Origin: Thecamonas trahens ATCC 50062
Lineage: Eukaryota; Protista; Apusomonadida
Assembly: GCF_000142905.1 (NCBI RefSeq)
Contig: NW_013657670.1
Span: forward strand, 211,498 to 275,497
Direction of reading: 5' to 3'
DNA: 64,000 nucleotides
The notes under the pieces were generated by a model. The model ran no database searches, was not told the origin of the DNA, and was given only the letters and a program-made list of their open reading frames with translations. A program made the position numbers and the translations under genes. This document shows positions 4,700 to 61,600 of this stretch, piece after piece. Numbering within the stretch: position 1 is the stretch's first letter; each line of letters begins with the position of its first letter.

Positions 4700-6197
4700 T
4701 TACTCCTCGAGCTTGCCGTACTTGAGGTTGACGTAGGCAGCCTTGAGCTCGTCGAAACCGACAAGGACAAGAGCACCGGCGAGGCCACGGAGGACGTTCG
4801 AGCCGGCACCCTTGAAGAGGGCGGCGACACCCTCCTCCTTGAGGATCATGTTGAAGGCGCCGATCGACGACTTGTACTTGTTGGCGTTCTCGCCACCCGA
4901 AACCATCATCATGCGGCGACGGATGGTGTCGATCGGGTACGCGGCGATACCGGCGACGGTGGTCACGGCGTAGCCGAGGCCGAACTTGGCGAGGAAGCCG
5001 AGGTCCTTCATCATCGGGGCGACAGTGTCGAAGATGCCGAAGTAGGCACCGCGGTAGATGATGATACCGACGCACGAGATGACAAAGCCGTTGTAGACGC
5101 CACCCTTGAACCAGCCAGACTTGGCCGCGGTCTTGCGGATGCAGTCAATGGTACCGGTGAACTCGCGCTTGCCGCCAGTGCCGACATCGACAGCAAGCCG
5201 CGTCCGGGCAAAGTCGAGCGGGTAGACAACGAGGAGCGAGGTGGCACCAGCGGCACCGCCAGACGCGACGTTCGAGTAGAGGCGCATGCCGAACGAGGCA
5301 TCCTTCTCCACCTTGAAGATCTGCTTGTAGCGCTCCTTGAACATGAAGTTGAGGGCCTGGGTCGGGAAGTACCGCATGACGTTGGCCATGTTGCCACGCC
5401 AGAAGGCGGCGACACCCTGCTCCTTGGGCACACGCACGAGGCAATCCATGATGCCCTTGTACTCACCCTGGGCCTTGGCAGCTGTCATTCCACCATACCG
5501 TCGCCATTGGGGTGAGTCATTCGTCCGCCTGCCCAGCCCTGCCATTCCCTCGCGAAAAACGGCCGCAGCATCCCTCCAAACGGGGGAAAGGTCCACGACT
5601 GCCCACGGGCAAGCTGCACGCAGCCTGGCAGACACGCTCTCACGCGCTGCAACACGCACCACCACCTTCCATGCAGTGCCCCTACCGCACTACATCCCTG
5701 CGGCAGGGAGTAGCAGTGCACCAAGGCGGCGGCTGGGGTGGAGGGGGGGGGGGGAGGGGGCGGTCCCAAGCGGCAGTGGAGGCAAAAAATAATCTCTCTC
5801 CCTCCATCCACAAACGCGTCAAGCGGGACAGGCCAGGGGGGGGGGGGTCTGTGGACAAGGGTGCCCAGGCGGGTGTATGACCAAGCGGGAGGAGAGAGGG
5901 AAGGGGGAAAGGGGGGGAGCGGGAGGGGAGGGGGGAACTGGCTGTGGACGTACCCGCGGACTCGCCCTGGTTCTGGAGGAGGAGCTTGATGCGCTCGATG
6001 GGGGCGGCGATGGTCTTGGAGATGGCAGCAGCGGTACCACCGAGGAGGAAGTCCTCGGCACCGTTCAGCTTGCGCGACTGCTTCTTCTTCTCAGCGCCGG
6101 CAGCAGCGACAACCTGGAACGAGGCCTTGGCCGACGGCATGGCCGTGGTCGCGAACGACGACGGCATGGCCGTGTACGACGAGATCGACGAGAACAT
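4700..6197 (-). CDS. AAC/ANT: Mitochondrial ADP/ATP carrier; exons 6197-5954 and 5481-4700
   Basis: [48 protein letters not shown] and the AAC signature RRRMMM. A phase-1 GTACGT...GACAG intron joins two ORFs in frame. Confidence 0.96.
5482..5953 (-). other. Spliceosomal intron of AAC (472 nt)
   Basis: Donor GTACGT, ACTCAC at 5517-5512, acceptor TGACAG. Restores [15 protein letters not shown]. Confidence 0.9.
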
Positions 6198-6350
6198 TGT
6201 TCAATAAACTCGAGAGGGGTGCCAAATCGCCGAATGCTGAACTCGTTCTCGCTCGCCCGACCGGCCGACTCCGGCCGACCGACTGCCCAACTCGCGCGAG
6301 TCGGGTCGACTCAAAGTCTCCATTTCCCGCCCCTATTTTTTGGCTTTCTG

Positions 6351-9300
6351 TCACAGATCGCTAGCAAGGATTGCCACGCCGGCCTGGTAGTACTCGGCGC
6401 TTGGCGTATCCACTGGCTTGGCCAGCTGAAGCTCAAGGAGGAGCTGCCGCCGCGACGCGTCAAGGTAGAGCGGGGCGATGATGACAGCCGCTGCCGCCGG
6501 GGCCTCCACCGACTCGCGGTGCTTCCAGCTGAAGATCATGGTCGGGAGCGCGTTGCGCGGCGAGGACGAGAGCTCCAGGCCCGAAGTCGCAACCGGCCAA
6601 TGCGCGTTGTCTGCTGCAAGGTCTAGCATGGCAAACGACTGGTCGTCAAGCCGCGCCGCCGATCCGGGCGCCACCGCAAGCACGAGCTCCTCCAGCGGCC
6701 ATCCGCGTGACTGCGCCGCGTACTGCCGCGACGCCGTGATGTACGCCTCGGGTGAAAAGAGCCGGCCAAGCCTGAGCCCCGTCTTGCCGCACTCGGCAGC
6801 CGGATCGTGCGCTACACGCCCGAGCTCGCTCAGTCGTTCGCCCAAGTTGGCCACAAACGCCGCCACAGACGTGTCTGGAGGAATCGGGTACGCCCGCCAC
6901 GAGCCCGGCACCACCCCTGTTGACAGGTCGTCCACCAGACCGCGGAGGTAGTTGGTCACCTTGACCTCGCCCACGCAGTAGCGTGCCACAGACTGCAGGT
7001 CACCCATGACTGTCGCCTTCAGCTCCAGCGCACGCGAGACCTCACGCTCCAGGCACCGGTACAGCGGGTTGAGCATCGCCTCCTGATCCAACGCCATCGG
7101 CTTGAGCGGCGGCGTTACGTCCGCCAAGCCTGTCCGCCACCGCTCAGCCGCGCTGCCAAGCTCGCGCATCCACGCTGGAGCACCAGCGCTTCCGCTATCG
7201 TCCTCAGCAGCTGTTAGCACAAGGTCGTCGTCCGCGACTGCCACCAGCTTGCGCGCCGCCGCCACCAACGCCTCGCCCTTGGCAGCAAGTACCACATTCT
7301 CGGCGTTGGCCGGCAGCCCCAGCCAGGCAGGTGTCTGCGAGTCAGGAAGCTCGCGGACAAACGCCGTGAAGTGCGCCTTGACACTGGCATTCGCCGGAAA
7401 CGCGAGCCCGGCCTCGAGCCCGGGCGAGCCCGGCGTGATGAGCCACCCGCCACCCAGAAGCTGCGGCGTGAGCAGCGTCTCCACAAACGCGCCCAGCAGC
7501 CGCCCGTCAAACTCGTTGTCGATCCGTCCGCCGTACACACACACCGCCAGCAGCGTCGAGAGCGCCGCCCAAGGAATCTCGCCCTCGCCGCGCTCGCCCA
7601 CCCAGTAGTCGACAGATGCCAGCGCAGACCGCATGTCGGCGTCGTTGAACTCGTACGACTGTGCAAAGCCAAGCGGGAGGTAGGCCAGCCGCTCCTGAAG
7701 GAGCGCGTGAAGCCATGCTACCAGAAAGTACAGCTTGGCCCGCGAAGGACTCGCCCCATCAAACCGCTCCACGTCGATCGACGCCAACGACCGCGTCAAA
7801 TTAGCCTTGATTCCGGGCGGTGGCTCAAAGACAAAGACCCGTGAGATCCGCAACAAGTTGGCCGGCAAATTATCCGACACCTCGCCGGTCATAAAGACAC
7901 GGAACGAGGCCTTGGCCTCCAGCGCATGAATCTTTTTCTCCAGCTGAACAAGCCAGTTGGGCGCAAGGTGCACGTTCTTAAGCAGGACCCATGTGCCCGA
8001 ACGTGCCGCTGCTGCCACGGCAGCCTCGGCTGCCGCAAAGCCCTCCGGTGACCCAATCGCAATCGACGCGCACGAGACGCCAGCAGCCGCCACAAGATCA
8101 TCCACCTTGCCCGACGCGTCGTGTCCGGGCCGCGAGACAAGAAGCAGCGGATTCGCCGGCCCCACCTGGCTCTCCACCACCTGACCGAGCTCAAGCGCAC
8201 CGGGCTCGAGAAAGGCCGCGCCAAACACCGCAGCCACAAACAGCCGCAGCGCCGCGAGCAGGCGGTCCGGTCGCGCCACCTTGATCGCCACAAGATGCAG
8301 AAACGCTGCCCGCGCACCGCCTAGTCCACTCCCGCTCGCGGTAAGCATCGAGCTCGGCAGCTGCCGCTCGGCAGGCACAGACAGGTCAGTCAGCGCCCCA
8401 CTTGACAGCAGCGCCGGCAGCGTCGGTGCATACCACTCGAGCGATGCAAGATCCGCTAGACTCGTCGCAGGACTCTCAAACGCCGCAAGCGCGTCCGCAG
8501 GCAGCGGCGTACCCGCGGCGTTGAGCCGGAGCTTGGCGAACTCAAACGCGAGGACCAACTTGTGGTCATTGAGCAAGCCGGCCTCAACCCGGCTGTACAG
8601 CGTGTCAAACAGAGCACCCAGTCGTGCGTCCAGCCGTGCCGTAGCCTCGCTCGCATCCAGCGGAACAGCAAGAACGTAGTCAAACGCGGTGAGGAAGAAC
8701 GCGAGCGAGTACTGGTACAGCGGCGCAAGGGCTGCCAACCGCTGCAAGCAGAAGAAAATGGCTGCAGACGCCGACGCCATCGGCGAGTACGTCTCTTCCA
8801 CAGCCGCAACCTCGGCCATGACCACGTCCGCGTCCGCTGCCTTGGACGCAATGTCCGCCGCATCGGCCTTGAGCGACTCGAGTGAGGTCACCACCGCGTC
8901 GTTGTCCAGAAGCGAGCCCTCGGCCGACGACAGAGTCTTCAGCAGTTGCGCCTCCATCGCCCGCAGCTTGACTCGGAACTCGCCTTGGACCTTGAGCAGC
9001 TCGGCACGCTTGGCGTCGATGTCTGGCCGCTCAGACTTGAGAAGCCGCGAGAGGCACTGCGACGAGAGTGACGCCGGCGTCACCGTAAAGTTGACAAACG
9101 TGACCCGCGAACAGAGGTCGGGCGCAAAGTTGAACGAAGGGTCGCGCGTCGCAAGGAAGAGCGAAAACGCCGGAGAGTAGTCAATGTCCTGGTCGCCAAG
9201 CTGGATAAGCACACGCCCGCCGACCCGACGCAGCTCGCGGTTGAGCACGGGATTGATGACCGGATCGTACGCCTCCACATCCTGCAGCAGCAGCGGCGTT

Positions 9301-20281: not shown

Positions 20282-20877
20282 TGCACAGGTTTTGTGGGGG
20301 GGGAGGTGTGGGTGGTATGGGTATGGGTATGGGGGGGTGGGATGAAGGGGGGGGGTGGAGTGCTTGGGCTGGTGCCACGACCTGGTGCTACGACGCAGGT
20401 GGTGGTGGCGGCGCGGGCGCGAGTTGTCAGCGAAAGGCGGCGGCCAAGGTGGGCGGCGGCGGGAGGGTGACGGCGATGGCTGGCCCAGTGCGAGTAAACC
20501 CATTTCGCGGAGGGGCAAATTTTCGCCCACCGGTAAGGTTATCCTGGCGGCACTGACTCGTTTAACTTACCTTGTGCCGTGTTCTCGGTGATCACGCAGG
20601 CCAGAGTACAGCATGTGCGGCCCCCCATTGCACCGCGGTGGGTGGCATGTTTGAGCTCATCAGCATACCACTGTTGAGCTCGGGCACGGAATTTGTTTAC
20701 ATCGGAGGAAGAGCGTCCGAGCTCACCTCCGCCCCTTCTTATCTTTTTGCCTCGGTGGCGACCCACCGTCGCTCGTCCCTTTGACGGCTGGCATCCTCCA
20801 TCCTCCAGGTAGTTGCAGTGCTCCTCACTCGCCCCCCTCCTCCTCCACGCACACACACCCAGTCCTCTCAAGTCACC

Positions 20878-29746: not shown

Positions 29747-31495
29747 TCACGACGACGAGCCGGCAGCGTCCTTGAGCTCGGCCTCGAGCTGGCGAACCTT
29801 GGTCTCGAGGGCGGCGACCTTCTGCTTGAGCTTGGTGATGGTGGCCTCCTGGTTGCGGTGGGCCTCACGGATCTCGTCCTCGGACATGTCAGCCGGGTTG
29901 ACGGGGCCGGTGGCGGTGGCGGCAGCCTCCGCGGTGACATTGAACGAGGCCTCGGTGGCGACAAAGCCGTCACGGAGCGAGACAAGGATGGGGTCGGCGT
30001 CGGAGCCGCCAAACCACTCATCGGCGGTGAGGGCGGGGACACCACCGGCGGTGTCGGGGAAGATGTCCTCGGCAAAGATCTCGGCCTTACGCGGGACGCG
30101 GAAGGAGAGCGGCTCGAGGGTGGTGTTGGTGAGCTTGAGGAGGCGGACAATCTCGCACTTGTTGACCGAGACGGAGCGCTTGCCGACGGAGCACATGCCC
30201 TTCTGCGAGTCGGACGACTTGTACTCGGAGATGTAGCAGACGAAGGGGTCCTCGTCAACGAGCTCGTAGTAGCGGATGTTGCCGTCACCCTTGCCAGCAA
30301 GGAAGATCATGGACGTGTCCGCGTCGTAGAACGGCATGAGGATGCCGGACGAGTTGTCGACCGACTTCTTGGTCATGGGCTTCTCGAGGTTGCGAGTGTC
30401 CCAGAGGGCGTACTCGCGCGAGGCCATCTTGGAGTAGCCGGTGGTGAAGATCTGCTCGCGGTCGCCGAGGAAGACGCAGCGCGAGCCCTTGATGCCGGCG
30501 TGCGAGGCGGTGTCAGCGACAGCGTCGGTCGAGCTGCGCGGGTCCCAGAGCTTGAGCTTCTTGTCCTTGCCCACCGAGCAGAACGAGGAGCCGTTGCGGT
30601 TCCACGAAAAGTCGTTGATGTTGTTGGTGTGGCCCGCGAGCTGGATCTTCTCCTCGGCCTTCTCGATGTCCCAAAGACGGATGGTGAGGTCAGTCGACGA
30701 GGTGGCGAGCACGTTGGCGGCAACCGGGTGGAACTGGAGCTGGCCAACCTTGCGGCCGTGGCCGGAGAGGGTGAGCAGCGGCTCAGTCACGTTCTCGGTC
30801 GGGCCGCCCTCGGGAACCTGCCACACCTTGGCGGTGCAGTCCTCAGAGCCGGACGCGACAATAAAGTCGTTGAACGGGTTGAACTGGGTGTCGAGCACGG
30901 TGCCGGTATGGCCCGCAAACAGCGGCGCGGTGGTACCGATCTTGCCCACGTTCTCGTGCGAGTTGACCATGAACGCACCGCCACCGCCGGCGTTCCAGTT
31001 GACTGCGAAGAAGTACGGGTTGGCCGAGACCATGTTCGAGTCCCATGCGCTGTCCTCGTCGGTTCGCGCTTGCGGTGAGTTCGGCCGCTCGCCCTCCGCC
31101 ACCGCTCGATGCTGAAGAATCGTGGCCTGAAAAAATTGGGTTCCAAGGGGAAGGCGACCAAGCCCACAGCGACAGCGCCTGTACACCCACCAAGTGCATC
31201 AAGGTCGATGCTCTCGCCGCCGCCCATGCTCTCGCGGGGGGCGGTGCCCTGAGGGAGGACTGAGGGGGCAGAGGTTGGATAGAACGTCGCTTCTTAGTGC
31301 GCGTGCGGGAGGCCGAGCGCAGCAACGATTTCGGAGGAAAAATAAACTGAGGACGCCAGGCAGAGCAAGTCTGCGGGTACGGGGAAGGCGCAGGACGTAC
31401 GACTTGGAAATGCGGAGCTCCTGGTACGTGATCTCACGCTTGGGCGGATCAGCGAACACGTGGCGGAACTTGGAGGCACGGACAAAGCGCGACAT
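29747..31495 (-). CDS. CORO1: Coronin; exons 31495-31401 and 31049-29747
   Basis: MSRFVRASKFRHVF, GHTGTVLDTQFNPFND, AGKGDGNIRYYE, SFRVPRKAEIFAEDIFPDT and a C-terminal coiled coil. Phase-2 intron. Confidence 0.96.
31050..31400 (-). other. Spliceosomal intron of coronin (351 nt)
   Basis: GTACGT ... ACTCAC (31080-31075) ... GAGGACAG. Restores ISKSAWDSN. Confidence 0.92.
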
Positions 31496-32867: not shown

Positions 32868-34605
32868 ATGTCCGCAGCCAAGTGCCCTGTGTGCACCAAG
32901 ACGGTACGTGAGACGGAGGCTCTCCGCGGTGTTGTTCGCACCCCTCTTGCCTGTGTGTCGTCTGCCGCGCTGCCTGGGAGGGGGGTCATGGCGCTGCGCT
33001 GCGCATGGCAGGCGTCCAAAAAAACGTCTGCGTGTTCATTCAGTGGAACTCGGTCCGGAACAGAGGCCCAACGCGAGTAGGAGGCGCATGCAACGGGTGC
33101 CGGCCACAAGTGCAGAGCAAGAGTGGGCGAAGAGAGGGGAAGGGGAGAGAGAGAGAGAGACGCTATAGAGGTGGCAATCTTGGAGGCGTAGGCGTCTGTG
33201 GAGAAAGGGGCGGTTTCGAGGTGATGGTTCCTTCCTCCCCCTGGCCCGAAAGGGAACGACGCCAAACTTGGACAACCTAGTGGGGCTTTCTTCTTGGTAG
33301 CGACTCACGGATGTGCCGGTGGGCGAGCGAGGACAGGCATACCCGATGGAGTCAGTGCGCGCGCTGTCAAAGACATTCCACAAGGCGTGCCTCAAGTGCT
33401 CGACATGCGGCATGTCGCTCAACCTGAAGACGATCGAGAGTGAGGGCGGAGTGCTGTACTGCAAGGTGCACCTGCCCAAGGCGACGGCAACGTCTGTGGC
33501 TGACTCTGTGGATGTGCAGCGGGCGACGTCTGCGCCGAAGCGGCCGGTCAAGAGTGGGATGACGGCGCCGCCGCCATCGGGCCCGCGGCCTACGCGGACG
33601 GGTGGCTCGAGCGGAGGAGGCTCGTCGCGCTTTGCCTCGGCGGGCGACAAGTGCCCGGTCTGCACCAAGACAGTGTACCCGACCGAGGCTGTTGCGGCGC
33701 TCGGGCACAAGTACCACAAGGCATGCTTCCGGTGCTCCGAGTGCAACATGTCGCTCAACCTGAAGAACTTCCAGTCGCGCGACAAGATCCTGTTCTGCAA
33801 GCCGCACCTCCCTAAGGAGTCGCACACCGCTGTTGCCGACGACATCCACACCCAGCGTGCCATCAACGCGCCGAAGCGGACCATGGCCCAGGGCGTGCGG
33901 TCCGACCTCGAGGGCGGTAAGCTCGTCGATGCCTCCAACTTTTCCGAGAACGACTTCCAGCGCGAGTCGCACTTTGACCCGGTGAACCAGACGACCGAGT
34001 CGCTGCCCGGTGCGCGCCAGGAGGAGGAGCCCGAGATCAACACCGGCGGTTCGGGCGGCTGGGGCGCCCCTGCGCCTGCTGCCGCAGAGCCGGAGCCGGC
34101 CTCGGGAGGCTGGGGCACCCCTGCGCCTGCTGCCGCAGAGCCGGAGCCGGCCTCGGGAGGCTGGGGCGCTCCCGCGCCTGCTGCCGAGCCGGAGCCGGTC
34201 GCTGAGCCCGCCGCCGACGAGTGGGCCGCAGAGCCTGCCGCAGAGCCTGCCGCCGACGGGTGGGCCGCAGAGCCTGCCGCAGAGCCCGCCGCCGACGAGT
34301 GGGCCGCAGAGCCCGCCGCCGACGATTGGGGCGCAGAACCCGCCGCAGAGCCCGCCGCCGACGAGTGGGGCGCAGAGCCCGCCGCAGAGCCTGTTGCCGA
34401 TGAGTGGGCTGCCGAGGCCGACACTGGCTCCTACCTGTACCAAGTCCAGGCCATGTACGAGTACGTGGTGGAGGAGGATGGCGAGCTCGGGTTCCCCGAG
34501 GGTGCTGTGGTCAACGTGCTCGAGGAGCTGTCGGAGGACTGGTGGCACGGCGAGTACAACGGTGCTGTCGGCATGTTCCCCGCCAACTACGTCCAGCGGA
34601 TCTAA
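32868..34605 (+). CDS. LASP-like cytoskeletal protein with 2 LIM domains, acidic Trp repeats and a C-terminal SH3; exons 32868-32903 and 33337-34605
   Basis: CPVCTKT|AYPME..FHKACLKCSTC..LYCKVH, a second LIM CPVCTKTVYPTE..YHKACFRCSEC, and SH3 AMYEY..ELGF..WWHG..GMFPANYV. The intron completes LIM1. Confidence 0.9.
32904..33336 (+). other. Spliceosomal intron of the LIM-SH3 gene (433 nt)
   Basis: GTACGT ... GACTCAC (33302-33308) ... GAGGACAG. Phase 0. Confidence 0.92.
34054..34412 (+). repeat. Coding tandem repeats: 3x GGWG(A/T)PAPAA(A)EPEP and 6x AEP(A/V)AD(E/G/D)W
   Basis: Directly visible in the DNA and the translation. Confidence 0.9.
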
Positions 34606-35594: not shown

Positions 35595-37500
35595 ATGCCA
35601 CGAAGGAGAGCGGCGGGCAAGGCTAAGAAGCCCGCCAACCCGCACAACGCGGTCTACGTTCACATCATGCTCGGCCTCGTGGCCGCAGAGAGCAACGACA
35701 ACAGGGCACGCGGCCTGCGCAAGGCGCTGCGGTCTGTCCTGGTCTATCCTCTCCCACTCGCTGCGCCGCATGAGGTCATCCGACTCGAAGGCATCGGCCC
35801 TTACACCCGCGATGCCGTCGTCGATGCGTACAACGCCCTGCTGGCGGCGTACGGACCCGAAGGCCTCCTCGCCGGCGCATGGGACGAGGCTCCTCCGCCT
35901 CCGTCCACGTCTGCGACTCCGGCAGTCGCTCGCAAGCGCAAGCGTGGACCCGGCGCCGGTCCCGAGTCGGCCGGTCCCGAGTCGGCCGGCGGCGCGCCGG
36001 CCAAGCGCAGCAAGCGCGCGTACCGACCGCGCAAAGGCTCGGGCGCGTGGGCGCTTGTCACCGCCCTGCATCGCTGGCAAGTCGACCAGTCGCCGCAGCC
36101 GTGGCGCGGTCCGGTGACCAAGGAGGAGGTCATCAACGTGGCCCAGCCGCTGACCACGTCGCAGTTTGCACCGCCCCAGGGCGACGACGCCAAGGCCGGG
36201 GCCCGCCGTGGTGCATCCATGGGCGGACCGGCGTACTCGTTCACGGCGTGGTCAAACATGGGTAAGCTTGTTGAAAAGGGCCTCGTGACCCGGGCTGGCC
36301 GCCCAGCGCGCTACTCGCTCACCGACGCCGGCATTGAGCTCGGCACACTGCTTGCGTCGGGCCAGCCTGCCCCGCGGCCATCCCAGCCATCGCGAGGCAA
36401 GGAAGAGGAGGTGCGGAAGAGAGTCCGTGCAGCTTCCGCTGCCTCGACCGCGCAGCTGCTCGCGCGTCCGGAATCGGTAGCCTCGAGTGCCCCGAGCTCG
36501 CACGCTGTGCTCTCGCCGCTGACGGCGCGGGCGCGCCGAGCCTCGCGCGCTCGCGCTCCGACTACTACACGTCACATGCGGTAAGCTCGCCAACGTGGGT
36601 GGCTGCGCGAACCTCACCCAGCGCATCTGCTGTCCAGCCGGTTGGCTCCCGCCCAACGAGCGGGGCGGCGAGCGATGGTCGGTACTCTATCAAGCTCATT
36701 GTCGACCGCCGAGAAGTGGTCCAATCCAGGCTTGCGGCGCGCAAGCTGGCCATGCACATGGCCAAAAAGACATTGCGTACGAAGAGCGGACATGTAATGT
36801 CGGAGACTTTGTCTTTATCATTACCGACCGAACGCAGCCCGGGTGCGAGTTTGTGGCCGACTTTATTGTCGAGCGCAAGGTCCTCGCTGATCTCGTCGGC
36901 TCGATCCGCAGCGGGCGGTACCGGGCGCAGCTAGCGCGGCTCGTGCAGAGCGGTGTCTCCAAGATATTCTTCCTCGTCGAGGGCAATTTCCTGGCCAAGA
37001 CTCCAATTGCTCACGGACCCGAGGCATCAACGCTGGCGTCGATGGCTACAGCCGTCCACCACATCAAGGCCAATGGCGGCAACGTCCACACCTCGACGTC
37101 AACGGCCGACTCGGCAAGCTGGCTTGAGGCTGTTTATATGTCGCTGACCAAGGCGGTCATCGACGGCGGCCTCGATGCCGTCGCAGCCCGCCATCCCAAT
37201 GGCAGTGGCGCCCTGCTTACCTTTGACGAGCTGCAGATCATCGGCGCCGTCGGCTACTCAGAGTCGGTCCGCTCCAACTTTGGCAAGATGCTCATGACTG
37301 TCTCGGGCATGTCGGCCGACAAGGCCGCTGTCGTGCTTGTCAAGTACCGCACATTGGGCGGACTTCGTGCTGCGTATCGCGCCGCCGGTCCCGATGCGGG
37401 TAAGACGCTCCTAGCCGGCGAAAAGGTGCCTGGTGCCCGCAACTCGTTTGGCCGTTCCTTGTCGAACGCGGTCTGGAGGGCGTTCTGGGCCGATGAGTGA
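35595..37500 (+). CDS. MUS81: Crossover junction endonuclease MUS81, split over three frames (possible 41-nt intron 36581-36621; one-base deficit at A5 36764-36768)
   Basis: N-terminal HhH (KALRSVLVYPLPL..LEGIGP), winged helix (YRPRKGSGAWALV..TAWSNM..LVEKGLV), ERCC4 nuclease (LIVDRRE..VGDFVFI..IVERKVLADLVGSIRSGRY) and C-terminal HhH2 (MLMTVSGMSADKA). Confidence 0.9.
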
Positions 37501-46764: not shown

Positions 46765-48958
46765 TCACCTCCGCTTCTTCTTGTTCTTCTTGTTCCGCTT
46801 CTTGTTGTTTTTCAGCTTACCACCGCCGTTTCCGCCGTTGTACGTGTCGTCGGAGGCAGCAGCGCCCTGGGTCGAGGTGTTGATGTTGCGGCCGCCGCGG
46901 TTGCGGCGCCCACGCGAGCGCGAGTTGCGGAAGTTGGGCCGGTCGCGCATGGGGGTCCACCGGTGCGGGTTGGGCGCGCGCGATGGGTCAAAGTTCTTTG
47001 CCGGCGGGTTCTTCTTCTTCTTGCGCTTGCGAACGAGCTTGGCCGGGCGGGCAGTCGATGCGCTGGCAGCGCCGGCGGCAGCCGACGAGTCGGCGGCGTC
47101 GCCCGACGTCGCTGCGCCAGCCTCCGACTGCTTGCCCTTGCGAGCTCCGCTCGTCCGCTTCGGGGCGCCGAGGACAGAGGCGATGAGCGCGTCGGCATTG
47201 CCTGCAGCCGGTGTCGGCTGCGGGAGGGCGGTGGCGGCGAGCTCGGCCTTGTCGGGGTCGGCAAAGGCGAGAGCCTTGACAAGCTTGGCCCGGAGGAGCT
47301 GCGAGTTCGGCGCAAGATCCAGGAGCTTGGAGAGCAGAACCGTGGCCTGCGCGGCCTTCCCGCGCCCGAGCAGAAACTCGGCGGCGCCCTCAAGGAGCTC
47401 GGGGCAATCACCATTGGCCTCGACCGCGGTCTCGATGACCTCGAGCGCGCCGGCGGCATCGCCGACTGCCTCCAACAGCGCCGCGTGCGTGCCGACAAAC
47501 GCGGGTGTGTACCGAATCTCGTCAAGTCCCTCGGCGGCAAGCATCTCAAGCACCTCGTCCCACTTCTTGTTGTTGTACGCGTTCTGCGCCGCCACCAGGA
47601 GGCTCGCGGTCTCGTCGACATCGCGCGCTGCCGCCAGCGTCGCCTCGACCTTGCTCATCTTGTTTTCGCGCGCATACAGCGTCGCAAGGATAAAGAGCGG
47701 CGTCACAAGCGTCGGCTCGCCCTTGCGCATCTCGTCGATGAGCGCCCGGCACTGCTCAAACTTGCCCATGTACATAAACAGCAGCGCCCGGTTGAGCGCA
47801 ATTGCCTGCTGCTGCGCCTTGGTCAGCCGCCGCCGCAGCACCTCGGCCGACGCCTTGGACGACTTCTTCATCGAGTCAAACAGGTCAGCCGTCTGCCGCA
47901 GGCACGTGATGTTGTTGTTTGCCACCGCGAGTACCGTGTCGTCGTTCAGCGACGCCTCCACTAGCTGCGCGTACACCGACGCCGCCTCCTCGCTCCGCCC
48001 GCTCAGCTGGTACACGTAACCCAGCTGTGCACGGATGACTGCAACCTCTTCCTCGATCTCGTCCTCGGTAAACCCATCCCCTGCAAGCACCTCGGTCGCC
48101 ACGGAAATCGCCTCGTGCAGACCGGCCTCTGCGCCCGCAAGGTCGCCCGCCGCAATCGCACGTGTCGCTTCGTTGTAGAGCAGCTCAAACCCTTCGCGCG
48201 CCTCCTTCTTGCTCAGCTGCAGATCCATGCTCGAGCCCACAGTCGACGCCGCGTAGTTGGCCTTGAGCTCAATCGGCACCGCTCCGTAGTTGGGATCAAG
48301 CAGCAGCGACCGGTACAGCATCAGCGCCTCGTCGTACTCCTCCAGTTTGTACAGCACCTGCGCACGGAGCTCCTTGAACGGAATAGCCTCACCCTCGGAC
48401 GCCTCCAGCGACGAGAGCAGCTCGCGTGCCTCCTCAAACGCAGACTGCCGGTACAGGCAGTACGCATGCTCAAACGCAAGCTCCTTCGAGAGCTCCGGTG
48501 TGAACAGGTCCGCAGCCTTATCTGCCTGCCGCTCCAGGAGCAGCAGCGAGATGTACGCCCATCGCGTCTCCTTGCACGGGTCGGCCTCAAACACTGAACG
48601 GTCGCCCACCGCCTCGCTCACCCGTGAGTGGACCTCGCACGCTCGTCCTCTCGCCCTCTTCTTTCTCCCTCCAGCCACAACTTGGCTCTCCTCTGTACCC
48701 ACCCCACCCCGCCTGCCCTTCCTTGCCTTGCACCTCCCCACCGCCTCGGCCACGACGGTCAACGCCGCCACCCGGCCCGGTTCCCTGCCCCTGACCTCGA
48801 AAATCAAACAAGAGGAACACGGACCGCTTGCCCCCTCCCCTCCTCCTTCCTCTCCCCTCTCCAAACATACGCTGCTTGCACACAGAGAGCGCAGCCTTGT
48901 ACGCGTGGTTCTCGATGTGGTGTTGGAGCTTCTGGTACTTGGCTGCCGTTCCCGACAT
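46765..48958 (-). CDS. SRP72: Signal recognition particle subunit SRP72; exons 48958-48871 and 48593-46765
   Basis: LAFEHAYCLYR, ELRAQVLYKLEEY, FELLYN, EIEEEVAVIRAQLGYVYQL, AVANNN, and the RNA-binding tail KKKK.P.KNFDP...PNPHRWTPMRDR. Confidence 0.92.
48594..48870 (-). other. Spliceosomal intron of SRP72 (277 nt)
   Basis: GTATGT ... ACTCAC (48629-48624) ... TTCAG. Phase 1, compatible on both sides. Confidence 0.8.
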
Positions 48959-49090
48959 CCTGCTCCACCTCGTCGAGTCGTGTGGCCACTCCCGCCGCGA
49001 CTACCCTCCCCACCCCACCAGCCGCCCTCGCCCACCCAATTCGCAGCCGACTCCCGGTCTCCGGCCACCGCTCTCCCGTCTTGCCCAGCC

Positions 49091-49646
49091 ATGTCGTTCT
49101 CGTTCTCTGGCCCAGACTACAAGGGCACCGAAGAGTCGACCTTCCCGCAGGCACGCGTCCGCAACATCATGAAGGCCGACCCCAACGTCAAGTCGGTCTC
49201 CTCTTCGGCCCTCTTCCTCGTCTCTCGTGCCACCGTAGGTGTTACCCTCCCCCCCTTCGCTTGTCCCACGTAGATTCATTCTCATTCACTCTCTCTTCCC
49301 CCCACCCCGCCACCACCACTCACCCCGGGCCACCCACGTCCCTCGCCGGCACCTGTGTGGACTGCAGGAGATGTTCCTTGAGCACCTCACCATTGCCTCT
49401 CTCCAAAACGTTGCACTGCGCAAGGAGGGTGGCAAGAAGACCATCATGTATCAGGACGTCGCCGCGGCTGTCCGCGAGCGCGACGAGCTCGAGTTCCTGG
49501 ACGACATTGTTCCCGATCCCATCACGGTCGAGCAGCTGGAGGCCACCCGTGCAGAGTATCCTCTTCTGCCTACCTCGACCGCTACCGAGGCGGCTGGCGC
49601 ACAGCCTGCTGCTGCATCCACGGCAGGCGCGGCAGCCTCCACATAA
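49091..49646 (+). CDS. H2A-like histone-fold protein (CHRAC1/POLE4/Dpb3 type); exons 49091-49234 and 49368-49646
   Basis: FPQARVRNIMKADPNV..ALFLVSRAT|EMFLEHL..KKTIMYQDVAAAV..LEFLDDIVP. Confidence 0.88.
49235..49367 (+). other. Spliceosomal intron of the histone-fold gene (133 nt)
   Basis: GTAGGT ... ACTCAC (49318-49323) ... TGCAG. Phase 0, restores ATEMF. Confidence 0.88.
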
Positions 49647-49665
49647 ACCACGCGTTTACCAACAG

Positions 49666-52920: not shown

Positions 52921-53198
52921 GCGCCGCCGAGCACTACGCCAAGCACCACAGTCGCAGTCAGCCTCGCCACCCGGACCAGCCTCGCCACTCGAGTCCGCCT
53001 CGCGCACTCCCCCCGCGCCCACCTCGCTGCTTTCAGCGAGAGGTGTAGGTGTAAGGTTGGCGGCGCAGGGTGTGGTGTGGGTGTGGTGGCGTATTGCTGG
53101 TGTTGGGGACACAGGGTGGGCCCAGCCCCAGCCACCACCTCTCTCCCCCCCCCCCCCCCCTTCCTCCTCCCCCTCCTCCTCTTTGTTCTTGTCCGGCT

Positions 53199-56100: not shown

Positions 56101-56798
56101 CAAGCATGCCCGAGTGTGGACTGTCGTCGATTAGCGGTTTGTCGTCTGGAGGACGAGGCCCGAACTCGCAGAGCCCGGACGAGTCTGATGCCAGCGACAT
56201 TGTCGTTGACGTCCCTCTCACGCCCCCGCCTGCCGAGCTCCACACTCTTGCCTCGCGCTACTTTATCCCTCCGACGACTCGGTTTGAGGAGGGCTCGCCA
56301 CTGCACGACCGCGAAATGGAGATCCTCAAAGTGGCGCGGCAGCGCGAGCTGGCCGACCAGATGCGGGCACGCATCATGCCCGCGGCCGAAATTGCGTCGT
56401 CGCCCCTGAGCCTGCGGCAGCCCGACGACTCACCGCCACAAGCTCAAGCTGCGCCCAAGCTACTCGCACGCGAGGCCGAGACGGCACAACCCACGCCAGA
56501 AGGACGGCGGCGGATCCGGCGGCGGCGCGCTTTGCCGGCTACGGCCTCGGCCTCGGCCTCGGCATCACCGTCGGCGGCAGCGGCAGGGGCGGTAGCTCCA
56601 AAGCCGGCTCGCCGGCGTCCCCCTCTGCTCCCAGCTCGCCGGTCGCCAGTGTGCGGTATGACACTCGTGGCGCAGGCATTGCCAACAAGTACCGGCTGGA
56701 CACTTCTCGGGCGCTTGGCATTCTGGCGTCGATCCGCCGGGCGGTGGCGGATGCCGATCTTTAACTCTTTCACCGCACCTTGGCGAGTTACAGTGTAA
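53199..56798 (+). CDS. Rap-GAP domain protein with a downstream CNH-like region (GARNL3-like); C-terminus uncertain
   Basis: KIGVL..GQ..EILGN..AFAEFL, GRLD..TGTHT, HVGTELP and the catalytic KKRHIGND. A beta-propeller-like middle region and a low-complexity tail follow. Confidence 0.82.
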   Translation: MASAGDATGAPLIVSDTFQVVPPAAGCRCAKLPSGRCSACAVPHAMYLENLPSERGWFAGYLLAGHASSPVDVFYLADSLPDAESAADWHPSTHAAATPYAFMLAFEGDVAGTKGGSPAVVRVVRWAASGCSYFRLALAKRKKKARANLKAILAALDPPLATRASAFHHALLPISNDETGEEDTDLAKLLASAKRDFAAVEVETVPHLLKIGVLLALPGQVDQSEILGNSQATPAFAEFLDCIAERVALAGLERWHGRLDASGLDRTGTHTYVTTWKPHNVEVLLHVGTELPDEPSSTQHIAKKRHIGNDRVILVFVDDESSASSFDPSTVTTAFGAVFIVVQPLPRSPTAPRRYRVWAATKSGIPPFLPLLPPSRVVAAAHLRAVILSLAYNGRAASWTAQRTADTTRFLLTMAFCKLRAISHPAERAALLAPRSAAMSSAYTPAPPSDWPVQRRPVATVALAPPLAVNPAFSIRPLKGRLASSGLKTGLEVTPLCDLVDGYAAVTGLGLVSSVSGEPVFRAELVSHLRTWRSSASATFVLAFLAGKSVAKAELHILWLASGSNPTPVVSSVPETRGAHALALVSNPDRRKDGFVLAIGLPKHQLALFASDPASKSVRRFHVEDVPGAVTSLAFHRTLLFVGLDNGVILRANLATGLEFVPLALSNPPSAAVSFLGVAPTAAVLVAGYDGGMSLGIPLAADPRQRVASLWRNRPSTPEPHYAVFGQSDLVLVAGDLALDVYAALSGAHLASLIEPATDASIPSPTRLAAYRLSSQPAPTATVFAWDAEAKATRIWHVTTVDSGITDERPGRGKITRFAEAEPQFEPQPAAEAESEAEAEAKTEAEAETEVEFEPGSGNHGVLVVDADQPLVMSSNSISPPLSPPLSPSSASLPSPEPRQVLSPSSLPAPALVEQSETRAERRSRSKRAKRGYEVVELLAAPLATSHGDAVAAAADADADETESSSSASMPECGLSSISGLSSGGRGPNSQSPDESDASDIVVDVPLTPPPAELHTLASRYFIPPTTRFEEGSPLHDREMEILKVARQRELADQMRARIMPAAEIASSPLSLRQPDDSPPQAQAAPKLLAREAETAQPTPEGRRRIRRRRALPATASASASASPSAAAAGAVAPKPARRRPPLLPARRSPVCGMTLVAQALPTSTGWTLLGRLAFWRRSAGRWRMPIFNSFTAPWRVTV

Positions 56799-59379
56799 AA
56801 GTGTCCGTAACCACACCTTCCAAGTCGGGCGAGGTGTCGATGATGTGGAGGTTGCGGTAAGGCCGTGAATTTTGCAGCGGCGGCGCCCAAGCCGCAAGAG
56901 ACTTCAGAATTGCGTCGAGCTGCGGACGGAGAGCCGTGGCGGTGTCGGTGAGGACGACCAGAGCGACGCCACCACCCATGGCGCCAGTGAACATGCCTCC
57001 ATGCGAGAGGCCAGCAGTCTTGAGCTGGGAAAACAGCTCGAGGAGAACCTTGCCCGAGGCATCGGTGTCATAGATCGACGACACCGCGCCGGGGTCGATG
57101 ATGGCGCGGAGGCCCATGTACGCTGTGAAACACTCACCGAGCTCACGGATGCGGCCAAAGCGAAATGCCTGCACAATGTGGGCATGGATGCCGAGCGAGG
57201 CCACGATGGCGGCGTACGGCTTGCCTTTCCGCCGCAGATACGACATGTGTCGGGAGTTGAGCCCGCGCCGATAGTCGAGCACAGCCGTTCGCTGGATGCC
57301 TGTGTCGACAACTAGCAGACTCTGGGTGGTGGCCCGCTCGGCGGCCTCAGAGACCCAGCCAACGGTGCACGGCAGGCTGGGTACAAGGACCGTTTCTGTC
57401 GGTGCGTAGTGGAGGAGCTTGAGGCCAGGCAGAACGCCGTCAACGTCCTGGCGACCAGACTTGAGGCCAAGGACGTTCTCAAAGAGCAGGACATGCGAGC
57501 CGAGGAGGATCGGATCGTCGGCGACGGCGCTGCCGCACGCGGCATAGAGTGCGCCGAGAAGGTTGACGGCGACGGCCGACGACGAGGCAAAGCCGGAGCG
57601 CGACGGGCCGGAGTTGATGATATCAACACAGAGCGCGTAGGCGCCGCCAGCATTGGGTGCTCCCGTAAATGCAGCGAGCTGTTCGAGGATGGGTGCGGTT
57701 CTGCGGCGAATGACGATGCCCGTAAACTCAAGGGCAAAGCGGAGGAACCTCAGCGGGTCGTTGGGATCGGAGGACATAAACGCATCGCTCTCGCAAGTCA
57801 CGCTCGGCTCGACGTCGGTGACGGCGGCGACGGCACGGGTCATGGCGGCGGCAACGCTAGGATTCTCGAGTGCCGATTCGGGCACCAAAAGCGCGCTCAC
57901 ACGTTCGCCGGAGCCGTTCCAGTGGGTGGTGGTCAGGCAGAGGCCTGGGAGTGGGGCCTGGACCCTGGAGACTTTGGCGCATAGCGGGCGGGTACCATTG
58001 ATGTTGACAGCCATGTTGAGGACCGAGCCGCCGCCGAGCTTGGCGGACGTCCAGTTGTCAGATGCGTTGGCGGATGAGATGCCAATCCGCATACCCGACA
58101 TGGAGACAACACCAGACTTGGTGTCGTCGAACCAGCGCGGGCCGCTGGAGCTCTCATCGGGAGCGGCGGCGGCGGCCATGAGCGACTCGTGGACGTCGTC
58201 GACCTCAACACCGTTGGCCGCCATGAGGAACGGGTTGAGGAAGCGGAAGAAGGCCTCCTCGTTTGGCTGCTCGGTCTCGGGCTCGCGGGAGGCGTCATCC
58301 ACGTCTGCGCTACCAGCGCGCTCAGCCTCAGCGACAGCCTCAAAGGAAGCGACCAGCTCGGCCGAGAGCGCCGGGTTACTGCGGCCGCATGCCTCGAGCG
58401 CGGCGCGCAGAAGCGCACTGACCCGGGCATACTCGGCAAGCGAGACACTGAGCTCCTCGAGCGCCAGAAACTTGCGCAGCGCCCAGGTGACGTCAGCGAC
58501 AGCCATGATCAGGCGCTGCTGGAGGAGACGGCCGCGCCCCGAACTCAGCTCTGCGCGAAGTAGTGCAGTGAGGCTCTCATAGATGGTGCTGGCAAAGGTG
58601 CCAACGGCACCATCGACATTGGCAAAGGAGGCGACGAGGTCGGCGACGCTCGCCTCGACCGCCAGCTCGCCGTCGGCGGCGACAGCGTCGGCGATGGCGG
58701 TGGCAGCGGTGGCGGCGTGGGTGCCGGGTTGCTCGCCCAGCCAGCGCTCGACCATGCCAAACCGCATGACCTCGACCGCGATCGGCCAGTAGACGTCGAG
58801 CGGCGGGGCGTGGGGATCAGAGGCCGGGACCGAGAGCTGCAGCACCCGCAACTGGGCCATCGAGACCCAGTCGGCGAGCGAGACGCCACGGTTGAGCGTC
58901 CGCAGCGTGTCTTTGGCGAGGATACGCAGCGCAGCGTCTGTCGCCGACGAGACAATGTCAAACAGGCCGCCAGCCACGCCGCCGACCACTGACTCGCCTG
59001 CATGGACCGAGACATCGACGAGGTGCGAGGGCGAGGTGCCAGCGCCAGCGCTGGTCGGCCTGACAGCAGCGGGAGGGGCGATGCCGAGGGCGGTGAACCG
59101 CGGAGCAGACGTGCTATGCTCTGCACCATCTTCTGCGGCATGTTCTGCCGAAGCGCCGCAATGGCTATCGGCCACGGCGCGAGCAACAGCAGCTTCAAAG
59201 GCAGCCAGGTCGAGCGAGAGAGCGGCCTCGACGCGTGCAAGGGCATGTCCAGGCATGCCCCACGCCGCCTCGCTGAAAAACTCGGTGCCGGTGGCAAACG
59301 GCAGGACTTGGTACCGCAGTACATCCTGCAAGGCTGTGCCGTCAAGGCGCTGGGGCACGGAGCGTGCCGTGTCTGCCAT
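56788..59379 (-). CDS. Divergent GHMP-family sugar kinase (fucokinase/HddA-like C-terminal half)
   Basis: GPSRSGFASSSAV (PxGxGLxSS-like ATP loop), ENVLGLKSGRQD, GGMFTGAMGGG, and motif-1 variant MRIGISSANASD..GGSVLNMAVNING. Confidence 0.75.
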   Translation of the reverse strand: MADTARSVPQRLDGTALQDVLRYQVLPFATGTEFFSEAAWGMPGHALARVEAALSLDLAAFEAAVARAVADSHCGASAEHAAEDGAEHSTSAPRFTALGIAPPAAVRPTSAGAGTSPSHLVDVSVHAGESVVGGVAGGLFDIVSSATDAALRILAKDTLRTLNRGVSLADWVSMAQLRVLQLSVPASDPHAPPLDVYWPIAVEVMRFGMVERWLGEQPGTHAATAATAIADAVAADGELAVEASVADLVASFANVDGAVGTFASTIYESLTALLRAELSSGRGRLLQQRLIMAVADVTWALRKFLALEELSVSLAEYARVSALLRAALEACGRSNPALSAELVASFEAVAEAERAGSADVDDASREPETEQPNEEAFFRFLNPFLMAANGVEVDDVHESLMAAAAAPDESSSGPRWFDDTKSGVVSMSGMRIGISSANASDNWTSAKLGGGSVLNMAVNINGTRPLCAKVSRVQAPLPGLCLTTTHWNGSGERVSALLVPESALENPSVAAAMTRAVAAVTDVEPSVTCESDAFMSSDPNDPLRFLRFALEFTGIVIRRRTAPILEQLAAFTGAPNAGGAYALCVDIINSGPSRSGFASSSAVAVNLLGALYAACGSAVADDPILLGSHVLLFENVLGLKSGRQDVDGVLPGLKLLHYAPTETVLVPSLPCTVGWVSEAAERATTQSLLVVDTGIQRTAVLDYRRGLNSRHMSYLRRKGKPYAAIVASLGIHAHIVQAFRFGRIRELGECFTAYMGLRAIIDPGAVSSIYDTDASGKVLLELFSQLKTAGLSHGGMFTGAMGGGVALVVLTDTATALRPQLDAILKSLAAWAPPLQNSRPYRNLHIIDTSPDLEGVVTDTFTL

Positions 59380-60787
59380 GGGGAGAGTGGGTGCAGTGGT
59401 GGAGGCTGGGAGGCGACGTTTCCTGCTCGGCGTGAGGCTGGCGGCGTGCAAAAGGCGCACCGACGTGGCATGGCTTGTGCGTGTGCCGGTGTGTGTGTGT
59501 GTTACGCCACTACGGCTGGGAGGGGGTGGTGTCGCTCACGTACCCACGACATCGTCGTGACAACGACAATGCAAAGGGATCGAGAGCAGGTAGGCTTCGG
59601 GCCGCTGAGCGGCACCGGCCGCCGCCAGGCACGGCCTGCCCCGATGCATCTGCATCCGTTGCTGCGCACAGAGCGCTAGCGCGGGACGAGAGCGGTAAGG
59701 AGGAGCGTGGTGGCAGGACCGGAACGCGCAAACAGCAGGTCTGATCAAGGTTGAGCGATGGAGGGGACGGTGTGGGCTTGCGCAAGTCGGTGGTCTCTCC
59801 AAATTGAAGGCCAGCCCGGGACGGGCCGCCAAGAGTGAGCCCCGTTGAGGTACCGGGAGGGAGGGATCGGGGCTTGTGCGATGTGCAGAGTGCGTCAGAC
59901 AGGCGAGCCGCTGGCGATCTGTCCGCAGTCTGCCGTGCGCTCGGCGGACGCGTCGCAAGCCCACACCTTGAGCTTTTGACGACGCCGCGCCCGCGAGCGG
60001 ACAGACAGACGATACAGAGCAGGACCAGAGGCAAGCCCTCGGCAGCAGAGCGCGAGTCGCAGCCCGAGCCCGAGCCGCTGCCCGCAGAGGAGCAGCGCCC
60101 GGCAGGCGCAATGACTTTGCTACGACAAAGCGAAAACGGCGGCAGCAGGACCCCACACGAGCTCAGCCACAAGGGCGTCGTTGCTCTGGGAGGTGTCGCC
60201 ACCTGTTCTGAGGGTACCGTTTTGAGGGCTGCAAGAGGCGGCGGTGGCAGCAATGGCGACAGGGGGGGGGGGGGGTGAGGGGTGAGGCGGGGGTGAGGCG
60301 GGGGGGGGGGAGGGTGCGTGTGTATGGGAGGCGCGGCTATATTTCATACAATCTCGCACCATCCGCAGACAGACGAGAGGGCGGGGAGGGAGGGGGAGGG
60401 GGAGGGGCGAGGGGAGGGGGGGGACGTACTGAGACTTTCTCTCGTATGTCCGGGGACTTTCCCCGAAGGGAGGGGGGAGAGGCCCGCCCGAAGGCGTCCT
60501 CTCGTGTGTGTGCCTTCGAATGCGCCTCTTCGGCGCCCGTGTGGCCGACCCAATTGTGTAGAGGAGACGCCAAAAGTGACAATTTTTGTTCGCCAACCAG
60601 ACCACCATCGACGGTGCTGGCTCGAACGGATTGGCGCTGGGCAAGGGGGGGGGGGCAGGGGGGGGCATTGCCGAACAAAGTGCGACCTGCCGCCGGCAGT
60701 CGGCCCCACAGCTGGCCAAGCCAAGGCTGGACAACAACGGACGCACACACTCGAGAATCCGCTCACCTCACTACATACATCTACACT

Positions 60788-61600
60788 ATGTTCCGCTCGC
60801 TCGCTCGTTCGCTTGTTGCCGCTCGCCCGGCTGCTGCCTCTGCCGCTCGTACGCTTCCACTGCCGTCCCCTCTCCTGCTCCCCTACCCTCCCGCTGCGGA
60901 TCGGTAGTGCGGCCATCCACCGTCCCTCTCTGCAGACCCGAGACTCACGACATACATGGCGACAGGCACCATGGCCACGACCACGGCTGCTGCCGAGTCT
61001 GGTGCGTCGTTCAACTGGGGCTTTGCTGCCGGTGCCGCGTTTGCCGGCGCTGCCGCGCTCGCCATCTCACAGTACTCGGGCGAGTCGTTCTCCACCATGT
61101 CCGCGGCGGCCGACGTCCCTGTGGCTGGCCTCCCCGGCACTAACCAGGAGCGCTCGTTCTTCATGGTCAAGCCCGATGCTGTCCAGCGCGGCCTTGTGTC
61201 CGAGATCATCGGCCGGTTCGAGAAGCGTGGCTACAAGATCGTGGCCATGAAGATGGTCACGCCGTCGCGCGAGCTCATCGAGGCTCACTACGACGACCTC
61301 CGCTCGCGCCCGTTCTTTGAGGGTCTCTGCAAGTACATGTCGTCGGGCGAGGCTCCTGTTGTCGCCTTTGTCGTCGAGGGCAAGGGCATCATTAAGGTCG
61401 GCCGCGACATGATCGGCGTCACCGACCCGCTCAAGTCTGCCCCGGGCACCATCCGCGGCGACACTGGCGTGAGCATTGGCATGAACTCGATCCACGGCTC
61501 CGATGGCGTCGAGGGCGCTGCCTCCGAGATCCCGCTCTGGTTCTCGCAGGACGAGATCGCCAACTGGAACAAGACCGCCGACAAGTGGATCTACGAGTAG
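60788..61600 (+). CDS. NDK: Nucleoside diphosphate kinase with a mitochondrial presequence; exons 60788-60848 and 60966-61600
   Basis: ERSFFMVKPDAVQRGLV, HYDDLRSRPFF, PGTIRGD, NSIHGSD, terminal WIYE. The N-terminus MFRSLARSLVAAR is Arg/Ala/Ser-rich. Confidence 0.95.
60849..60965 (+). other. Spliceosomal intron of NDPK (117 nt; an alternative in-frame AG lies at 60935)
   Basis: GTACGC ... GACTCAC (60942-60948) ... CGACAG. Phase 1. Confidence 0.78.

Follow-up and report, generated by a model that had tools for sequence, protein, structure and literature searches.

A 64-kb stretch of the Thecamonas trahens genome, which we call the window, poses a simple question: does the hexamer ACTCAC, which recurs near the 3' ends of its introns, mark the branch site, one of the three core splicing signals, and how might a motif with C in place of the usual purine just before the branch adenosine be read? 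The introns of the window and their hexamers, together with one further candidate, are:

5953..5482, minus strand: intron of the AAC (mitochondrial carrier) gene, 472 nt, donor GTACGT, 3' end GACAG
5512..5517, minus strand: ACTCAC of the AAC intron, with 31 nt between its branch-like A and the G of the AG
31400..31050, minus strand: coronin intron, 351 nt, donor GTACGT; an AAG and a GAG skipped, CAG used
31075..31080, minus strand: ACTCAC of the coronin intron, 26 nt to the AG
32904..33336, plus strand: intron of the LIM-SH3 gene, 433 nt, donor GTACGT; two GAGs skipped
33303..33308, plus strand: ACTCAC of the LIM-SH3 intron, 29 nt to the AG
48870..48594, minus strand: SRP72 intron, 277 nt, donor GTATGT, purine-rich; two GAGs skipped
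48624..48629, minus strand: ACTCAC of the SRP72 intron, 31 nt to the AG
49235..49367, plus strand: intron of the histone-fold gene, 133 nt, donor GTAGGT
49318..49323, plus strand: ACTCAC of the histone-fold intron, 45 nt to the AG
60849..60965, plus strand: NDPK intron, 117 nt, donor GTACGC
60943..60948, plus strand: ACTCAC of the NDPK intron, 18 nt to the AG
36581..36637, plus strand: candidate intron of the MUS81 gene, 57 nt, GTAAGC ... CCTCAC ... CAG

The six introns are present with the donors given in the initial annotation (GTACGT in three, GTACGC, GTATGT and GTAGGT in one each), and four of the six end in GACAG, as it had claimed. The reading frame is continuous across all six junctions, two of which are pinned by Pfam profile coordinates. 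In the histone-fold gene, positions 2-33 of PF00808 match exon 1 and positions 34-65 match exon 2, and in the coronin gene the two exons take up positions 1-29 and 31-66 of the DUF1899 profile; both junctions are codon-exact, with the profile searches of the spliced models run on single exons rather than on joined exon sequence. Elsewhere the domain matches fall in exon 2: Mito_carr in the AAC gene (E=7e-52), both the LIM and the SH3 domain in the LIM-SH3 gene, and the SRP72 and TPR domains in the SRP72 gene, which starts with an ATG at 48958. Support is weakest for the NDPK intron, whose exon 1 amounts to a short presequence; read-through is closed there (coding score -11), and exon 2 matches NDK with E=7e-50. 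The MUS81 candidate is unproven because it is in frame and contains no stop, and the window tally is six or seven introns per ~25 coding segments. A U12-type identity was rejected for these introns: their donors (GTACGT, GTATGT, GTACGC and GTAGGT) differ from RTATCCTT, and the branch site TCCTTAAC is absent.

Each of the six introns contains exactly one copy of ACTCAC, 18-45 nt before its 3' AG, which bears out the branch-like placement originally claimed for all of them. Across the window the hexamer shows no overall enrichment (35 copies against 29.2 expected), and its excess is accounted for by the six intronic copies. Compositional coincidence in CA- or C-rich non-coding DNA is a competing account, and it finds some footing upstream of coding segments, where C-rich hexamers in general are enriched, several permutations are as common as ACTCAC, and ACTCAC itself shows a modest enrichment by plain count (35 against 19.7 under a local Markov background). 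Measured against the genome background, this upstream-hexamer test is inflated by C-rich low complexity, and we dropped it for intron-level and donor-anchored tests. Under a first-order Markov model with the composition of each intron itself, the chance of finding ACTCAC in the last ~55 nt ranges from 0.0004 to 0.068 among the six introns, and the product over all six is 1.8e-13. Purine-rich introns carry the motif as well, as in SRP72, where the pyrimidine fraction is 0.29. Genome-wide, ACTCAC follows the donor GTACGT at about 200 sites, against 92 for the permutation ACACTC, a 2.2-fold excess; the two hexamers are similarly abundant overall (167 and 159 copies, respectively, in 354 kb), and several of the 92 ACACTC matches are ACACTCAC overlaps. 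Coincidence is already contradicted by these results, and we give it practically no weight.

The donor-anchored excess also shows that the signal is no quirk of the window, in keeping with the earlier suggestion that it is typical of the lineage. On contig C1, six further introns contain ACTCAC, five of them backed by Pfam matches of their exons (UCH, cofilin, a calmodulin-like protein, biotin carboxylase and a PX protein), with the profile matches starting at position 24 for the biotin carboxylase N-domain and at position 35 for PX. The pattern GTACGT N40-70 ACTNAC has 261 matches genome-wide, and among the first 100 of these listed the position before the putative branch adenosine (-1) is C in 77, G in 13, A in 5 and T in 5. 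The null share of C is 0.544, so that 77 of the 100 matches listed corresponds to a binomial P of 2.4e-6. The initial annotation had named CTAAC and CTGAC as the motifs against which enrichment should be judged; ACTAAC and ACTGAC show none, and ACTCAC is in excess. Its description of the C at -1 as fixed did not survive: the preference is strong, but an ACTAAC with a pyrimidine tract precedes the alpha-tubulin exon, and ACTCAT, CCTCAC and TCTCAC were also seen. In a curated set of 17 introns, which is small and was partly collected via the motif itself, 12 have exact ACTCAC, 16 have C at -1, and in all 17 both the T at -2 and the branch-position A are kept. Among the ~9-11 introns found independently of the motif, about half have the exact hexamer and ~90% have C at -1. 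Intron calling by codon log-odds with GT..AG pairing, and a ranking of 'coding-onset acceptor' hexamers, were too noisy to yield an unbiased genome-wide fraction, since the 65% GC genome has long spurious open reading frames; the output served to nominate candidates that were then vetted by eye or by Pfam. A search of metagenomes for relatives, with coronin exon 2 as the query, gave a best match 48% identical, too distant for intron comparison.

A motif recurring in this way might also be common by descent, if a single mobile introner-like element had given rise to all of the introns, and such elements do occur in other GC-rich, intron-poor protists. Copies of one element should resemble one another beyond the motif. 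The six window introns have in common just scattered low-complexity 8-mers, and the ~77 ACTCAC-bearing sequences among the matches listed are unrelated upstream of the motif, apart from one local duplicate pair. The idea is contradicted because extended similarity is lacking, and we regard it as having almost no chance of being correct.

The behavior of the 3' splice site offers a further view of what the hexamer does. Saccharomyces cerevisiae chooses its 3' site from the branch site, taking the first YAG downstream, and a pyrimidine tract is not obligatory. The T. trahens introns follow the same pattern: the acceptor is YAG in all 17 curated introns, and between motif and acceptor there is one YAG where 10.3 are expected (P=4e-4), alongside nine RAGs. 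Like yeast, then, T. trahens uses the first YAG, skips GAG and AAG, depletes intervening YAG and leaves pyrimidine content unconstrained; unlike yeast, it does so from a different branch hexamer. Branchpoint-driven definition of the 3' site, as the initial annotation had proposed, is supported by this use of the first downstream YAG, and the 3' site behaves as though defined from the branch site. The accompanying description of the segment before the AG as mostly purine-rich fits five of the six window introns (pyrimidine fraction 0.28-0.37) and fails genome-wide, where many introns are pyrimidine-rich. No polypyrimidine tract is required: from motif to AG the pyrimidine fraction runs from 0.22 to 0.88 and lies near the intron-body value in most introns. 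The distance from motif to AG is 18-63 nt, with a median of 28, in the 17 curated introns, a variability that sets T. trahens apart from Yarrowia, Trichomonas and Entamoeba invadens.

Together, we consider it likely that ordinary GT-AG introns in T. trahens have ACTCAC, or more loosely ACTCAY and some NCTCAC, as their branch-site consensus, and that the 3' splice site is set from it. Judging from the motif's position and its resemblance to ACTAAC, the branch nucleotide would be the second A of ACTCAC, the counterpart of the branch adenosine in yeast ACTAAC; the T at -2 and the A at 0 would be retained, with C in place of the usual purine at -1. The acceptor would then be whichever CAG or TAG comes first beyond a minimum of ~11-18 nt from the branch, with GAG and AAG passed over and a pyrimidine tract dispensable. 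The hexamer might instead be the site of some other intronic factor, or its C at -1 might itself be the bulged branch nucleotide, and base-pairing reasoning shows that ACU-(C)-AC would pair perfectly with the GUAGU of a standard U2 box. Against both stand the conserved T (-2) and A (0), which occupy the two defining positions of every known branch site, the appearance of ACTAAC in the same place in the alpha-tubulin intron, the single copy in each intron, and distances of 18-63 nt that, with the first-YAG rule, match what a branch site predicts. We therefore view a role other than that of a branch site as quite improbable.

As a branch site, ACTCAC can be compared with the strong consensus WCTRAYN of intron-poor eukaryotes, which takes the form TACTAAC in hemiascomycetes, ACTAACC in Cyanidioschyzon, WCTAACA in Trichomonas and ACTGAC in Ostreococcus (Irimia and Roy 2008, PMC2483917). 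T. trahens resembles these strict-branch-site lineages in having a strong donor consensus and one well-conserved hexamer near the 3' end, and it displays the extended donor consensus and single dominant branch hexamer of their 'strong signals' syndrome (Irimia and Roy 2008). It may share their poverty in introns, but the intron density of the window (6-7/~25 coding segments) far exceeds the cutoff of ~0.1 introns per gene that defines intron-poor species (PMC2483917). Measured against WCTRAY, its motif is unchanged at every position (-4 A, -3 C, -2 T, 0 A, +1 Y) but one: at -1 it has C where these sites have A or G, breaking with the R common to all listed lineages. Metazoans use the looser consensus yUnAy, and CTCAC is one of many branch sites used by human introns (Gao et al. 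2008, PMC2367711). CTCAC and CTCAT of T. trahens both fit yUnAy; unlike that degenerate family, a single hexamer dominates, with a strong preference at 'n'. We found no published description of an ACTCAC branch signal in T. trahens. An earlier study of 5' splice sites names 'canonical branchpoint motifs' for this species and does not give their sequence (bioRxiv 10.1101/2022.06.08.495308).

How the signal is read bears on the snRNAs and on SF1. In lineages with a strictly conserved branch site, the purine at -1 forms a base pair with the pseudouridine in the GUAGUA box of U2 and helps the branch adenosine to bulge out. Recognition of ACTCAC would presumably run through SF1 and then U2, and the state of U1, whose gene lies in the window, provides a point of reference:

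20563..20731, plus strand: U1 snRNA gene, RF00003, 52.2 bits, full length

The 5' end of this U1 is standard, ACUUACCU, and shows no adjustment to the C that donors carry at +4, in agreement with an earlier report of a standard U1 5' end in T. trahens (bioRxiv 10.1101/2022.06.08.495308). A standard U1 beside +4 C donors implies that the organism tolerates one uncompensated consensus mismatch. The donor +4 and branch -1 shifts are alike, each putting C in a position at which the pairing snRNA would call for A. Because U1 is unadjusted, we take conventional recognition as the default also at the branch site, with C tolerated where the branch sequence faces the second base of the GUAGUA box in U2. 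What is hard to explain with unchanged U2 and SF1 is the preference for C, as against the G of other GC-rich strict-branch-site lineages, such as the ACTGAC of Ostreococcus (PMC2483917).

That difficulty could be met if a trans-acting factor had co-evolved with the cis signal, either through a U2 box changed to GGAGUA, whose G would pair with the C at -1, or through a retuned KH-QUA2 pocket of SF1. C leads at -1 (77 of the first 100 matches listed) while G and A, which would pair with the standard U, stay at background, and a purine is kept at -1 in all published strong branch sites (WCTRAYN, PMC2483917). There is also precedent in Entamoeba, where a GUUUGU donor is accompanied by a changed U1; T. 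trahens has its donor +4 C with a standard U1 (bioRxiv 10.1101/2022.06.08.495308). The assembly itself is equivocal. The RF00004 profile finds no U2 match in it at E<=10, although an RF00003 search by the same tool finds U1, and five sequence patterns run across the assembly returned nothing credible; the absence of a canonical U2 5' region fits a divergent U2 and equally a gene missing from the assembly. A 14-nt U2-like stretch in locus L031 belongs to an H/ACA-like RNA and was set aside. Three 16-mer matches containing GGAGTA are no more than chance expectation. Moreover, the U1 of the same organism is uncompensated for +4 C, ACTAAC is still in use, for example before the alpha-tubulin exon, and to our knowledge the U2 GUAGUA box is nearly invariant across eukaryotes. 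On the protein side, SF1-HH (PF16275) has a single match in the genome, in a 435-aa open frame (G000:C44:219418-219681, 98.8 bits), and the accessible text of PMC3064769 gives no value for the affinity of SF1 for UACUCAC. On balance we hold co-evolution of U2 or SF1 to be possible but doubtful.

With either mode of recognition, the ACTCAC signal is genuine and recurs across the genome, as a likely variant of a core element of splicing. A purine at -1 (WCTRAY) has been reported for every lineage with a strictly conserved branch site (PMC2483917). The strong preference for C in a free-living relative of animals and fungi therefore constitutes a natural experiment on how far the choice of branch site depends on the -1 base pair and on SF1. 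If the U2 box proves to be changed, it would be, as far as is known, the first U2 to have co-evolved with an altered branch-site consensus, in parallel with the U1 of Entamoeba. There is a practical side as well: the gene models of T. trahens have been reported to include 'non-canonical' introns in unusual proportion (PMC11347168), and the rule GTAYGY ... ACTCAY ... first YAG would make the annotation of introns and 3' sites far more reliable. At the 5' end of that rule, the 16 curated introns with an assigned donor all begin with GTAYGY, GTAAGT or GTAGGT.

On sequence evidence, ACTCAC is a genuine intron signal across the T. trahens genome and probably a variant branch-site consensus, coupled to choice of the first downstream YAG (CAG or TAG) as acceptor. 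Re-reading the sequence reproduced all six introns of the initial annotation, with their coordinates, donors and ACTCAC-to-AG distances (from the presumed branch A, the second A of the hexamer, to the G of the AG):

5953..5482, minus strand: AAC intron, 472 nt, donor GTACGT, distance 31
31400..31050, minus strand: coronin intron, 351 nt, donor GTACGT, distance 26
32904..33336, plus strand: LIM-SH3 intron, 433 nt, donor GTACGT, distance 29
48870..48594, minus strand: SRP72 intron, 277 nt, donor GTATGT, distance 31
49235..49367, plus strand: histone-fold intron, 133 nt, donor GTAGGT, distance 45
60849..60965, plus strand: NDPK intron, 117 nt, donor GTACGC, distance 18

Domain searches run separately on each exon uphold the gene identities (Mito_carr; coronin-type WD40 and DUF1899; LIM and SH3; SRP72; NDK). 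The histone-fold and coronin junctions are codon-exact: in the former, exon 1 closes with PF00808 positions 2-33 and exon 2 opens with 34-65; in the latter, DUF1899 is divided into positions 1-29 (exon 1) and 31-66 (exon 2). Of the six, the NDPK intron has the weakest support, as its exon 1 comprises a short presequence only, but read-through is closed and non-coding. The window as a whole is not enriched in ACTCAC (35 copies vs 29.2 expected), and each of the six introns contains exactly one, within its last 50 nt. With the 3'-terminal 60 nt simulated for each intron from its own first-order composition, the chance of an ACTCAC ranges from 0.0004 to 0.068 per intron, with a product of 1.8e-13. 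We found no extended similarity among the six introns, which are thus not copies of one element. Further ACTCAC copies at 40192-40187 and 46667-46662 (both minus strand) sit in non-coding DNA immediately before coding segments, and a C-rich tract and CAG come after one of them; these could mark 5'-UTR introns, and no convincing donor was found for either. The window also has an assembly gap at about 2260, and 634 N across its length.

Beyond the window, which is G000:C10:211498-275497, the motif recurs in the assembly (28.7 Mb, 131 contigs, about 65% G+C), from which we sampled 200 kb of a second contig, C1, and 30 loci of 3 kb. The C1 sample yields 6 more introns with ACTCAC, 21-63 nt before the acceptor, and Pfam profile matches in the exons support 5 of these. 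Those five are:

UCH gene intron: exon 2 matches Peptidase_C12 from profile position 15
cofilin intron: an in-frame stop lies 3 nt upstream of the acceptor
calmodulin-like gene intron: directly after the ATG
biotin carboxylase intron: N-domain begins at profile position 24
PX protein intron: PX domain begins at position 35

Introns identified independently of the motif show the variants ACTCAT (2 introns), CCTCAC, TCTCAC and ACTAAC. The last is the one clear case with A at -1, the base before the branch A; there, a canonical ACTAAC, a pyrimidine tract and CAG lead into the alpha-tubulin exon that begins QPDGQMPSDK:

C1 sample about 75300-75353 (minus-strand index), within L013: alpha-tubulin ACTAAC site

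Genome-wide, GTACGT followed after 40-70 nt by ACTNAC gives 261 matches, and the first 100 listed comprise 77 with C at -1, 13 with G, 5 with A and 5 with T. Against a null share of C of 0.544, taken from the abundance of the four ACTNAC hexamers in 354 kb sampled, 77/100 among the matches listed has a binomial P of 2.4e-6. Among these listed matches, low-complexity, intron-like sequence precedes most ACTCAC copies, and the ACTGAC matches inspected resemble coding sequence. The control permutation ACACTC has a similar overall abundance (159 copies vs 167 for ACTCAC) and occurs at the same position after GTACGT in 92 matches, vs about 200 for ACTCAC; ACACTCAC overlaps account for at least 11 of the 92 listed. 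Neither ACTAAC nor ACTGAC is in excess upstream of coding segments. Tested against CTAAC/CTGAC, the comparison proposed for refuting the motif, ACTCAC proved enriched genome-wide over ACTAAC/ACTGAC, so the finding stands. The intron sequence after GTACGT in the matches listed tends to be of low complexity, either strongly C/T-rich or strongly G/A-rich, with runs of CCCCTCCC or GGGGAGGG; these matches include an exact local duplicate pair, G000:C12:243767 and 244142.

Acceptors in the 17 curated introns (window and C1) are CAG in 15 and TAG in 2, and 6 GAG, 3 AAG and 1 CAG are skipped on the way from motif to acceptor. The one CAG skipped follows an ACTCAT by only 10 nt, and its intron has an AGTCAC further down. 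YAG is depleted in this interval (1 vs 10.3 expected from intron bodies, P = 4e-4), and RAG (GAG or AAG) mildly so (9 vs 15.9); in the cofilin intron, 63 nt after the motif are free of AG. This pattern fits a choice of the first downstream YAG, anchored on the branch site. Budding yeast makes a branch-site-anchored choice of this kind, and the apparent mechanism in T. trahens would be alike by analogy. Polypyrimidine tracts had been described as usually absent, which is true of this window but does not extend beyond it: the pyrimidine fraction from motif to acceptor runs from 0.22 to 0.88 across the curated introns. Since it is variable and in most introns near the intron-body value, a pyrimidine tract is not needed as a signal. 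GACAG does end four window acceptors, as claimed, and 5 of the 17 in all; ACAG ends 8, and A at -4 may be mildly preferred in this small sample (n=17).

Lineages with strong branch sites all conform to WCTRAYN, and GC-rich Ostreococcus uses ACTGAC (Irimia and Roy, PMC2483917). ACTCAC keeps every position of this consensus but the purine at -1, and fits the loose human yUnAy (PMC2367711). In the literature searched, we found no report of a lineage whose consensus is ACTCAC or CUCAC, and no description of the T. trahens branch site; an Entamoeba preprint merely credits the species with 'canonical branchpoint motifs' (bioRxiv 10.1101/2022.06.08.495308), and a survey flags it for many non-canonical introns (PMC11347168).

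The window encodes a U1 snRNA whose score is below the gathering score, and which a default Rfam scan hence misses:

20563-20731, plus strand: U1 snRNA gene (RF00003, 52.2 bits, full length)

It has the standard 5' end, UAACUUACCU / ACUUACCU, so the donor consensus GUACGU is mismatched at +4, uncompensated. The same preprint describes C at donor position +4 in T. trahens, along with one U1 that carries the standard pairing sequence (bioRxiv 10.1101/2022.06.08.495308); both the +4 C and the standard U1 5' end are seen here. For U2, the assembly gave no match to RF00004 even at E<=10, none to two gapped patterns and no exact match to GCTNAGATCAAGT; those 1-mismatch matches to GCTNAGATCAAGT that we inspected are coding sequence or an H/ACA-like RNA. 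When up to 3 mismatches were allowed, a 25-mer from the conserved 5' region still matched nothing, and a 16-mer spanning the branch-binding box found chance-level matches only. Either the assembly lacks the U2 gene or the gene is highly divergent. SF1 is single-copy in the genome (PF16275, 98.8 bits). That U2 or SF1 changed together with the ACTCAC consensus strikes us as rather unlikely: with a standard U2, high GC content should favour G at -1, and the selection of C instead speaks for such a change; that U1 is uncompensated for its donor mismatch and that ACTAAC is still in use speak against it.

We rejected one U2 candidate, in sampled locus L031, as a two-hairpin H/ACA-like RNA:

L031 1443-1590 (G000:C4:124459-127471), plus strand: H/ACA-like RNA, weak Rfam H/ACA matches

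A 14-nt identity to U2, AGATCAAGTGTAGT, spans its hinge. The RNA is probably intronic, given an ACTCAC ... CAG 3' end downstream at about 1669-1703. Separately, the window's MUS81 gene (plus strand) shifts frame between the start of its ERCC4 domain and the GDF motif, at 36740-36800, with too little space for an intron; a single-base error in the assembly is the probable cause. The gene also contains a separate 57-nt in-frame candidate intron at 36581-36637.
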